From NCBI RefSeq assembly GCF_006345805.1, contig NC_042998.1:109182001-109246000 (forward strand): a stretch of DNA of 64,000 nt, read 5' to 3'. The DNA is from Octopus sinensis. Its lineage: Eukaryota. The position numbers and the translations under genes were made by a program. Shown here piece by piece: positions 9,760 to 20,739 of the stretch; the first letter of the stretch is position 1, and every line of letters starts with the position of its first letter. The notes under the pieces are model-generated. The model worked only from the letters and a program-made list of their open reading frames with translations, was not told the origin of the DNA and searched no databases.

Positions 9760-10510
9760 ACGGACTGTGACTGAACATGCAGACAGCACATCTTGTTCAC
9801 ATGCTCATGTATTCTGTTTTTGGCATGGTTTCTATAACTGGATATCTGTTGTACCATCAACCATTTTACATACTGTACTAGGTGCATTTTAACAAGTCAC
9901 CAGCACAAGAAAGGTTGACCTATGCAAGGACATCTAAGTATTATCCTCATTCTACCATGTACCTCTCCTTATTTGGAGCTACTACCCTCCCAGATAATTG
10001 CAAACAGGCCTGTAGATGTGATTGTGAATATATTCATCATCATCATCATTCCTCCATCCATCCATCTATCTATTTTCCATGGGGCATGTCAGAAGGCTAC
10101 ATCAAGATCTACTGTTTAATTTGTTATAGTTTACTGCTGGATGCCCTTCCTAATTCCAACAATTCTGCAGAGTGTACTGGGTGTTTTTTATGTGGTTTCA
10201 GCATCAGTGAAGTCACCAAGTAACTTGCAGGACAAAACCCCTCAAATGGGAGAGGGAATTGTATCGAGGGACAGAAAAGTGTCTTGCATTAGAATAGAAA
10301 CATAGCTACTTAAAATTGGGAGAGAGAGAATAGAGAAGGATGGTGAAGATGTGACTGGAAGGGGTGACAGCATAATATTGTGGGTGAGGGGGAAGTTCAT
10401 AGGGATTTTACTTAGCTGAGTGGGTCTTCTCAAGCACAGAAAATCATCAATTGTCTAGGTCCTTGGTTATCACCTTTGAAGATCATTTCTCTCCACTTCA
10501 TTCCATGTCT
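9760..10510 (-). mobile_element. Decayed RTE-associated 3' fragments
   Basis: Contains the catcatcat...ttccatg / ggatgcccttcctaa module also seen attached to RT-bearing copies at 14.1 and 24.1 kb. Confidence 0.5.
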
Positions 10511-17344: not shown

Positions 17345-17810
17345 CACCCACATGCACATTGTGCTTCCAGAATCTCAGTGCCACTGAGGTGGGTGAATTT
17401 CTTGAGAATCATATACTGCCAATCATCCTGGTCCTTTGTCATCTCCTTTGTGTTGTTCAAGGTTCACCACTTCATGCTATGTCTTTCTGGATCTCCTTCT
17501 GCAAACTCAATCCACATTAAGTAAATAGTACTACTTTACACAGCTGTCCTCATATATATTGTATTACATGTCCATATCAGCACAGTTTTCTTTTTTGTGC
17601 ACTATATCTGATTCCTCTTGTACCCAGTTTTTCTCTCCAACACATTTGTACTTTGTCATTTAGGCACACTTACATTGCACATCCAGCAGATTGTGCTAAT
17701 TTCATTTTCCTCCCATCTTCTCAAGTCTTCTACATTCAAGGCCTGTCTCACTACAGCATCTTAGTTCTAACACATACACCATGCAATGTGCCATTCAATC
17801 TGATGAGATG
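17345..17810 (-). mobile_element. RTE LINE C-terminal fragment, decayed
   Basis: Similar to the 14640-14830 and 24590-24950 segments (cacattgcacatccag, tgagaatcatatactgcc). Confidence 0.55.
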
Positions 17811-18070
17811 TGTGTGTGTGTGTTTATGACATTTTTTTCATTGCTAGAACACTTGGTCATAGATTAACAGAATTATCTAAACAGAAAAATGCGATTATTA
17901 CTTTTATAAGCTTTACTTCTAAATCAGAAAAATTCTTGTTAAATAATTTTACTGAACAAATTCTCTTGTTTTTATATATGTTATTTTAATATTAAGGTGC
18001 TTAATTCACCTTACTTCATATGTCAATTTATTCATTGTATTTTATTGTTTTCTTTCTTCTTTTTATCCAG

Positions 18071-18238
18071 GTGTCATCACAAATGATTTTGCAGATGAAA
18101 TCATATTAGATCCAAAACTCATAGCCAAACATTATATAAGAACATGGTTTTTCTTGGACCTCATAAGCTCAATTCCAATGGACTATATCTTTCTCATGTG
18201 GGACACTGAGGCTAACTTCAATCAATTGTTCCATGCAG
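18071..18238 (+). CDS. HCN: Internal coding exon of an HCN (Ih) channel, S2-S3 loop through S3-S4 linker
   Basis: Long pyrimidine tract ending ttttatccAG at 18070. Translation (G)[55 protein letters not shown](G) matches the invertebrate Ih motif [31 protein letters not shown]. Donor CAG|GTACGC at 18239. 168 nt, phase 1 at both ends, consistent with flanking exons ending FRT-G and starting G-RALR. Absent from the ORF track because it has no ATG. Confidence 0.96.
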
Positions 18239-18399
18239 GTACGCGAATGGATGTATCCCAATACTGGCAAGGTGATCATTCTCGTTTTTTTAATTAATAT
18301 TTCATTCCAAATTTCACTATAAAAAGTCATATGACTTCCTCATTTCACTTAATCAAATTTTTTTATTCTTCTTTATATGTATTGTTTTTTTAACACTCA

Positions 18400-19170
18400 C
18401 ATGGCCATCGTCAACACCACCATCATTATTATAATCCTCTTTGTTGTCAGAAACCACATCATTAGCATTATCAATATCAGCATCAGTATTATAATCATTA
18501 ACATCACCATTATCATCTTCACTAACATCATCATCATTATTACATTCATCTTTCATCATTGTTGGCTTTAATCATCATTAGCATTAGCAAGATCATTATC
18601 ATTATCATCATCATTACCATCATCTTCACCATTATCACTATCATTGAAATCATAAAATTGCTAACTTTGATCTATTTTTCATTAGTATTACATGACTGAA
18701 CATTAATTATCATCATTTCTGACCTTTAAAATATTAACAACATCAAAAAATAAACAAAACTGAGACAACATTAGTAAAAAAAAAACAACTGCTAAAATAA
18801 CAACAACAACAACAACCATAATAATATTATTAATATTATGTTTATCATCATCATCATCATCCTAGTAATCATCTTCTTAATTACCCTTGTCACTTATTTG
18901 ATTCTCATGAACTGTTATTTCTGCAATTATTGACACACTCATTGTTATTTACCATTATTCATCACCATCATCACCACCATCACAGTCATCATCAACAGCA
19001 TCACCATCATCCTAATTTCCATCATTATTACCAACATCACCATTATCACCACCACTACCATGATGATAGTGATAATCATCATCATATTCATGATCACCAT
19101 CATCATCATTACCATCATGATCATAGTCATTATCATCATCATTATCATTACAGTTACCATCAGTAATAAG
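18400..19170. repeat. Degenerate (CAT)/(CAC)-rich low-complexity tract
   Basis: Dense catcat/caccat/tcatta repeats; source of the spurious poly-His/Ile/Met ORFs. Confidence 0.85.
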
Positions 19171-20739
19171 AATCCCACCAAAGTTGTCTCTAATAACAAA
19201 AGACAAAATTACTATACATATAACAGAAATATTATTGCATTTCAACCTTCTGTCTCTCACTGCCAAACAAGATCAGCATGTAACAAAAACCCTAATTATT
19301 GTTTCAAATGCTAAGTCTCAATCTCTTCCAGTGAACACACATCCTCAGCATAACAAAGACTGCATCACATAAACTGATCATCACTTCTGAACCAAAAAAT
19401 CCTCCCATTACTATTAACTCATTACAAAGCTAGGATGAGACCTACAATGAAGGCTCTTACAACTAGAATAGTGCTGCTGATACAGACACAGACATCTTAA
19501 ACTGCATCTAAAAATTGAGCCACTCATGTGATTGGCATGAAGTCAGTCAAAAACACACATCATTCTCTAGCCTGCCTCATACTGTTCTCTCACTTTGTCT
19601 TTTCTGCTGCTACTACAATTAGTTCTGTTCTTCTGAAGGGGCTGACCTAGGTATTAGCACCACTCAAGCGCTTCCAGCCCTCATTTCTACCACTCTCATC
19701 ACACATTTTGTGCCCATGCCAGCTTCATACTCATACTAACCACAGCAGCTAGTCTTTTCAATCTATAATGCCTGGACTCAGAAATTCCCTTCATGCACAA
19801 GTTTTTCGAACAACTATCAGTTTGTAATTATTCAAGCAGAACATTAATCACATAAATCTCATTAGCCTGGGAGGGCCTTCTTAAAGAGCAAAGCAATAGT
19901 AAAGATTAAAATAAAGCATTATATTCTACATTAACATCATCATCTGAATATTTTGCAAAATCATTCACATCTCAATCCTGTTATCCTTCACCTTCTCATT
20001 TCCATCAACAGCAGTAATATCTTCATCATCATCATCATCGTCGTCATTATTGTTGTCTTCTTTGCTACATTGCTGTTGTTGATATTATCGTCATTATCAT
20101 TGTTGTTGTAGTCTCCAGCCTTGCTCTCATCACCACTACTATTATTACTCTTGCTGCTAGCATTGTTATTTAGTTTATTATACTAATTAATACACTAATT
20201 GCAATCTCACAATCATTAGAATCACATCGCATACTAGCCACAATAATTGTTAAAAATACAAACATGCCATCCAGGTATATAAGATCACAGCTATCAATTT
20301 GTCAAACTCCCATGTATTTTTTTATTCTTATACTATCATATTTTCTCTCCAACAAATACATTTTTCAAATATTATATATTTTTCTTGGGCAATTAGCTTT
20401 GGAGTTTTCCTCTTGATCTTGTAAGGAGTCTGTTTAACAAATTTTAAGGATTCTAATTGATATGCATTGACTTAAATAACATATTAATGATGTCTAAGAA
20501 TTAACAAGCAAGCACATCATTATTGTAGAGTTATGATTGGTATTTAGATTAGTTGGTGTACCACTACACTGCCATCATCACTACTACTGCCAATAAAAGA
20601 GAACCCATCCATATTTTGGCTTCAACTTCTTAGTGGAACAGATTCTCATTAAAAGCTTAGGAAAGAAACACACAGCAAAATTTTCTGTACTTTCTATCCT
20701 GGAATTTCAAACTTCATGCTTCTAACTTCAAGTGTAATC

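Follow-up and report, generated by a model that had tools for sequence, protein, structure and literature searches.

Rhythmicity and excitability depend on HCN channels, and voltage sensors are known to be tuned through the linker that precedes S4. In HCN1, the length of the S3-S4 linker has reportedly been altered systematically. In other channel families, a Shaker study indicates that the length of the S3-S4 linker alters gating (PMC2217197), and two CaV1 reports describe optional S3-S4 segments (exon 29 of CaV1.1; IVS3-S4 variants) that change voltage dependence or kinetics (PMC4886277, PMC5279877). Among arthropods, alternative splicing is reported to modify the channel properties of PIIH from Panulirus interruptus (Ouyang et al. 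2007, J Neurophysiol 97:3880). A literature search found no paper on a mollusc HCN splice variant. Here we describe an HCN exon located within a 64-kb stretch of DNA (the window, meaning the whole stretch that was analysed) and argue that it probably carries two tandem 5' splice sites, an old molluscan feature that would produce HCN isoforms with short and long S3-S4 linkers, a reading to which we assign a probability of roughly 60%.

The exon lies on the forward strand at positions 18071..18238 of the window and encodes the S2-S3 loop and S3 together with the first part of the S3-S4 linker, ending in phase 1 (...FHA + G). Immediately before it stands a 3' splice acceptor AG (18069..18070, +) with its preceding pyrimidine tract (ctttttatccAG), a boundary of the form ...yyyCAG|G that is also present in the orthologs described below. 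The exon was identified as a homolog of the HCN S2-S3 loop/S3 segment by its match to the HCN1 core (tblastn, E=1.9e-10), by database matches named HCN with 77-94% identity, and by a profile search in which full-length HCN proteins align across it. Neither tblastn nor six-frame motif scans detected any other HCN exon on either strand of the 64-kb window, the exons for S4, the CIGYG pore and the cyclic-nucleotide-binding domain included, which places the flanking introns at more than 18 kb upstream and more than 45.7 kb downstream. In related loci the S1-S2 exon is found 2-6 kb upstream (L001, L014 and L017) and the S4 exon 1.7-3.9 kb downstream (L024 and L027), so that the introns of a few kb in relatives correspond to much larger ones in the window's genome. 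Introns of this size, together with the CpG depletion noted below, would suit a cephalopod. A (GT)n microsatellite occupies positions 17810-17826, about 245 nt 5' of the HCN exon. Past the exon, a long imperfect low-complexity tract rich in ATC, ATT and CAT extends over 18390-18660 (+), beginning about 120 nt past the second donor described below and coinciding with the strongest GC skew of the window (-0.415, at 18001-20000).

The exon is followed by two GT donors that share a phase and enclose an open reading frame, and the same arrangement was found in 14/14 orthologs. Donor 1 (CAG|GTA, in the context CAG|GTACGC; 18236..18241, +, with its GT at 18239-40) occupies the ancestral intron position, and its GCAG|GTA is invariant in 14/14 sequences. 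It is followed by a putatively optional coding extension of 33 nt (18239..18271, +; G|GT ACG CGA ATG GAT GTA TCC CAA TAC TGG CAA G), for which we give below evidence of coding constraint and of two proteins, P0347 and P0348, that contain it. Donor 2 (AAG|GTGATC; 18269..18277, +, GT at 18272-73) is in the phase of donor 1 and is likewise invariant in 14/14 taxa. It is spanned by a near-invariant block of 22 nt, TACTGGCAAG|GTGATCATTCTC (18262..18283, +), defined from the 14-taxon alignment, and when neither donor is used the frame reads through to a first in-frame stop, TAA, at 18295..18297 (+). An earlier sequence-only reading of this DNA had proposed a second in-frame donor at this place, and its coordinates and frame were confirmed (exon 18071-18238, open frame 18239-18271, GT 18272-73). 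It had also pointed to CpGs retained in the segment; two are indeed present in the 33 nt, in a window where the CpG observed/expected ratio is 0.22 and where at least two CpGs occur in 2.9% of 33-nt windows. Within the exon and the extension, CCAATGGACTATATC (PMDYI, 18185-18199) and CGAATGGATGTATCC (RMDVS, 18245-18259) are alike at 12 of 15 bases in direct orientation, a weak resemblance that could hint at local duplication as its origin.

Some in-phase GT located 12-60 nt downstream and before a stop is common in this DNA, being found for 45 of the 110 AG|GTR sites of the window (41%), and an in-phase AG|GTR downstream accompanies only 2 of the 110. The predicted pairing with the 5' end of U1 amounts to -7.1 kcal/mol for donor 1 and -6.7 kcal/mol for donor 2, compared with -14.0 kcal/mol for a perfect site, and by this measure both donors rank in the top 2-3% of all 3455 GT sites present in the window. 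Taken from a single sequence, the tandem-donor pattern is thus weak evidence and only suggestive, and it is the comparison with relatives that makes the case strong.

To assemble orthologous loci, the exon with its read-through was used as a protein query against short ORFs on genomic contigs, and the DNA of the loci was fetched. A frame-blind scan of metagenome contigs with the 20-mer TAYTGGCAAGGTGAWCATTC retrieved three HCN contigs, which represent two further distinct sequences, all of them in frame, and the resulting comparison set consists of 14 distinct orthologous sequences. The other seven matches of TAYTGGCAAGGTGAWCATTC (L019-L023, L025 and L026, also from metagenomes) are apparently bacterial genes from three independent sequence families which likewise encode YWQGDHS; since, by rough estimate, a few chance matches are expected given the size of the collection, they were taken as coincidence.

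In the group of these ORFs that has a common exon peptide, the read-through into the intron is conserved and conforms to FHAG-x(2-9)-[LM]DASPYWQ-GDHS. The distance between the donors is 33, 39 (in 11 loci), 42 or 48 nt over the 14 loci, always a multiple of three, and the inter-donor segments contain no stop in 184 codons. The eight codons of the conserved core (NTG GAY GCN TCN CCN TAY TGG CAA) change mainly at third positions, with pS of 0.68-0.70, pN of 0.11-0.13 and a ratio of 0.17-0.19, values that are pairwise sums over only eight codons and not phylogenetically independent. On the same pairwise basis, pN/pS is 0.29 for the five most variable codons of the core and rises to 1.3-1.9 when these bases are translated in the +1 and +2 frames, and the flanking exon gives a pS of 0.87 and a pN/pS of 0.07 over the 14 taxa. 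Because the extension shows a synonymous divergence similar to that of the exon while its peptide is held, it bears a protein-coding signature in the predicted frame, and the in-frame pN/pS, the indels in multiples of three and the lack of stops together identify the inter-donor segment as being under protein-coding selection. The sequence-only reading had listed a lack of conservation of the 33 nt in related species among the grounds for refuting it, and the segment is instead clearly conserved, under coding selection, in the 14 orthologous loci.

The closest relative, L016, shares 94-96% protein identity over the exon, and only positions 18049-18294 of the window can be aligned with it (88%), no similarity to the window having been found in the rest of its 15.7 kb. 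Its extension measures 39 nt (13 aa), from which the 33 nt (11 aa) of the window differ by an in-frame deletion of 6 nt. The six nucleotides absent from the window are AATGCG, at 18242-18247, within the CG-rich context ACG(AATGCG)CGA of the L016 region 10001-10453.

At donor 1, the terminal Ala codon of the exon, which supplies donor positions -3 and -2, is GCA in 14/14 sequences, and of the 26 degenerate exon codons with an invariant amino acid it is the single exception, the other 25 varying at their third position. All 14 sequences use GGT for the split Gly codon, and the residue that follows it varies (T, K or N) with a codon that always begins with A, which is donor position +3. Donor 1 is thus constrained at the nucleotide level. 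Around donor 2, hardly any position of TAYTGGCAAG|GTGAWCATTCYC differs among the 14 taxa; the 22-nt block, which has no second copy in the window and is expected there zero times by chance, varies at only four positions (the Y of TAY, the W of GAW, the Y of TCY, and a C/T difference confined to a single taxon). Its conservation reaches past the usual donor consensus and then ends abruptly, the sequence from position +13 of donor 2 to the TAA stop showing no conservation across the 14 taxa. Two further candidate sites were discarded: a U12-type donor, as the GTATCC of the window shows no conservation among the orthologs, and a farther downstream donor, CTC|GT, which is not conserved in them.

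In L024 and L027, exons for S4, the CIGYG pore and the cyclic-nucleotide-binding domain follow downstream of the ortholog of our exon, and the corresponding regions are also present in P0347 and P0348. The S4 exon begins with cag|GC AGG GCC CTA CGG and with cag|GT CGT GCC TTG CGG in the two loci, a phase in which the codon split by the intron specifies Gly from either donor. The predicted joins are ...FHA-G-RALR for donor 1 and ...FHA-G(T/K/N)...YWQ-G-RALR for donor 2, and with the latter the insert directly precedes the first S4 arginine. The earlier reading had placed the insert before S4 ('GRALR'); the S4 exon lies outside the window, and the placement agrees with these orthologous loci.

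Two full-length HCN proteins in which the insert is fused to S4 emerged from a profile search that exhaustively covered 1.84 billion representative proteins. One, P0347, is the RefSeq model XP_022331362.1 (1057 aa), whose accession range we take to be that of the eastern oyster; the other, P0348, is the Lymnaea stagnalis model CAL1535595.1 (1094 aa), which carries an insert of 11 aa. Both are gene models and may be computational rather than RNA-supported. P0347 is 92% identical to P0010, the genomic read-through of a close relative (locus L014), as far as YWQG, where the former continues into S4 and the latter into GDHS, implying that the exon of the model ends exactly at donor 2. Word-indexed protein searches yielded no full-length mollusc HCN among the matches listed, all of which had 536 aa or fewer. 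Conservation, the phase of S4 in relatives and these two protein models all bear out the suggestion of the sequence-only reading that a second in-frame donor would insert 11 aa before S4.

Gastropods, an oyster-like bivalve lineage and the lineage of the window all have the extension, which annelid (Helobdella P0226, Capitella P0230) and flatworm proteins lack. Genomic ORFs of annelid type (P0014-P0021) diverge directly after HAG, which indicates an intron position in common with donor 1. One mollusc-like ortholog, P0013, shows no in-frame extension at the protein level. From a variable N-terminal part joined to a conserved [LM]-D-A-S-P-Y-W-Q core in all three extension-bearing groups, the pair of donors appears to be ancient. 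In the extension-bearing lineages no donor-1 transcript was seen, both full-length models using donor 2. Two Candidula gene models, P0011 and P0160, stop at or leave from donor 1, but they constitute weak evidence, being either incomplete or fused to sequence that is not HCN; P0160, from Candidula unifasciata, leaves from donor 1 into non-HCN sequence at what is a mishandled junction.

These results have to be weighed against the alternative that donor 2 simply replaced the ancestral donor, so that the exon extends to 18271 and every HCN product contains the 11 aa, with GCAGGTA being kept for some other role such as that of an exonic U1-binding or enhancer motif. The use of donor 2 in both full-length public models and the lack of any observed donor-1 transcript agree with such a constitutive extension, under which a coding constraint on the segment is equally expected. 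What it leaves unexplained is the invariance, in 14/14 sequences, of three sites that the protein does not constrain (the third positions of the Ala and Gly codons and the first base of the next residue), all of which fit the consensus of a 5' splice site, in an exon where the remaining 25 degenerate codons with invariant residues all vary. Moreover, the U1 pairing of donor 1 is no weaker than that of donor 2. We consider this, the main rival, unlikely, although it deserves to be kept in mind. Far less probable is that the extension is an ancestral feature no longer used in the lineage of the window and now decaying. The window does have the shortest extension (33 nt, with 6 nt fewer than in L016), and its core departs from the consensus at two residues (MDVSQYWQ compared with MDASPYWQ, where V and Q replace A and P), but the deletion is in frame, no stop has arisen, neither donor nor the 22-nt block is damaged, and the full-length model of Lymnaea also has an insert of 11 aa.

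Another alternative is that the conserved sequence is a non-coding intronic element (a splicing enhancer, the complement for RNA editing, or an RNA structure) that is not translated and in which the open frame is incidental. The conservation of the 22-nt block at all positions, third codon positions included, does speak for constraint on the nucleotides and not on the protein, and RNAalifold proposes a helix of 6 bp between GCAGGUA and UAYUGGC. Upstream of the block, however, the synonymous bias is found in one frame only, the indels are all multiples of three, and public proteins carry the peptide. Neither do the structural analyses favor a folded element: z-scores of single-sequence folds range from -1.2 to +1.1, searches for a duplex partner gave z-scores from -1.9 to +1.3 with no consistent site, and the RNAalifold consensus reaches only -4.9 kcal/mol with no compensatory pairs. 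Since both of its arms are invariant, the GCAGGUA/UAYUGGC helix is neither supported nor excluded by covariation, and the folds, the duplex search and RNAalifold revealed no stable, covariation-backed pairing with a consistent partner. A 7-nt pairing of the block with the AAY-GAY codons of the exon was rejected, as it is broken in 9/14 taxa, which have GAC there. A scan against Rfam gave no significant family match; a sub-threshold SNORD11B-like match at 18560-18622 (-), with 21.7 bits compared with a gathering score of 50 and E=0.57, lies inside the low-complexity tract and is most likely due to chance. An untranslated element is, on balance, a highly improbable account of this segment.

We consequently favor a pair of alternative donors, a reading that builds on the layout of the exon and its donors, on their conservation, on coding constraint in the extension, and on relatives, in the phase of whose S4 exons and in whose public models, spliced at donor 2, it finds agreement. 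The window exon (18071-18238) is then part of a molluscan HCN (Ih pacemaker channel) gene with two same-phase tandem 5' splice sites. Splicing from donor 1, after 18238, would join ...NQLFHA-G straight to the S4 exon (RALR...) and produce the short linker, the form found in annelids, arthropods and vertebrates. Splicing from donor 2, after 18271, would retain the 33 nt, insert 11 residues and regenerate the same split Gly codon, thereby lengthening the extracellular linker by 11 residues right before the first S4 arginine. Donor 2 is probably used in the species of the window, and donor 1 would be used as well, as suggested by its conservation at the nucleotide level and by its being the ancestral site. 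Because both donors are sub-optimal and balanced in their U1 pairing, and because donor 2 lies in a 22-nt block that extends beyond the usual consensus, the choice between them is probably regulated. The longer linker, more acidic and aromatic, would be expected, by analogy with other voltage-gated channels, to shift the voltage dependence or the kinetics of Ih. It is conceivable, and we propose it tentatively, that the two donors and the block make up a regulated splice switch kept since before the split of bivalves, gastropods and the lineage of the window (possibly cephalopod), in which a conserved trans-acting factor would recognize the block, or a weak donor-1:donor-2 helix would act in its place, setting linker length cell by cell and so tuning the voltage dependence of Ih.

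A natural insert before S4 that is conserved across the sampled mollusc lineages offers a ready isoform pair with which to test the effects of linker length and charge on hyperpolarization-activated gating. The donor-2 block is, in turn, a candidate splicing-control element that can easily be mutated in a minigene. There are also consequences for annotation, as homology-based models of mollusc HCN that end at donor 1 would miss 11-18 residues, and read-through models yield truncated proteins, as in P0136 of Plakobranchus ocellatus, which has the same block and runs through both donors to the stop.

The arthropod Ih/HCN channels (PIIH of Panulirus interruptus, and Ih of Drosophila and Apis) belong to the same gene family as the exon of the window, and the sequence-only reading had cited splicing of their linker as a parallel. 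A paper on arthropod splicing does exist, as reference lists confirm, but the variation is at a different position and is not homologous. In the arthropod sequences recovered, HAG-RALR is continuous and intronless, and the length variation is located about 10 residues upstream, in FNQ-[variable]-DFS(D/E)SFQILHAGRALR. Among the arthropod ORFs recovered, neither the intron nor the linker position of the mollusc extension was found, and this difference in site and intron implies that the arthropod variation arose independently. Some arthropod HCN fragments (P0134, P0051, P0135 and P0137) differ from others (P0142 and P0156) by the segment between FLIFNQ and DFS(D/E)SFQILHAG, which in genomic ORFs starts with a Val codon (GTN) and ends in ...LQ, in the manner of a short in-frame intron or optional segment, and which could be the splice site of the arthropod linker.

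Other described systems resemble the HCN pair in part. The optional segments of CaV1 are also short peptides placed just before an S4 voltage sensor, but they belong to another gene family, derive from cassette exons instead of tandem donors, have been tested functionally, and have no sequence homology to the HCN insert, which is known here from sequence. The linker studies in Shaker and HCN1 indicate that linker length before S4 tunes activation, but they deal with engineered mutants and not with natural isoforms. The long mollusc form is already present in public protein predictions and its novelty is modest, what is notable being the breadth of its conservation and the near-invariant block at donor 2. 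As a class, conserved tandem 5' splice sites with an ultraconserved intron flank are the closest in architecture, with balanced sub-optimal donors, an in-frame segment between them and nucleotide conservation that continues into the intron, and compared with that class the HCN case stands out in being conserved across several mollusc classes.
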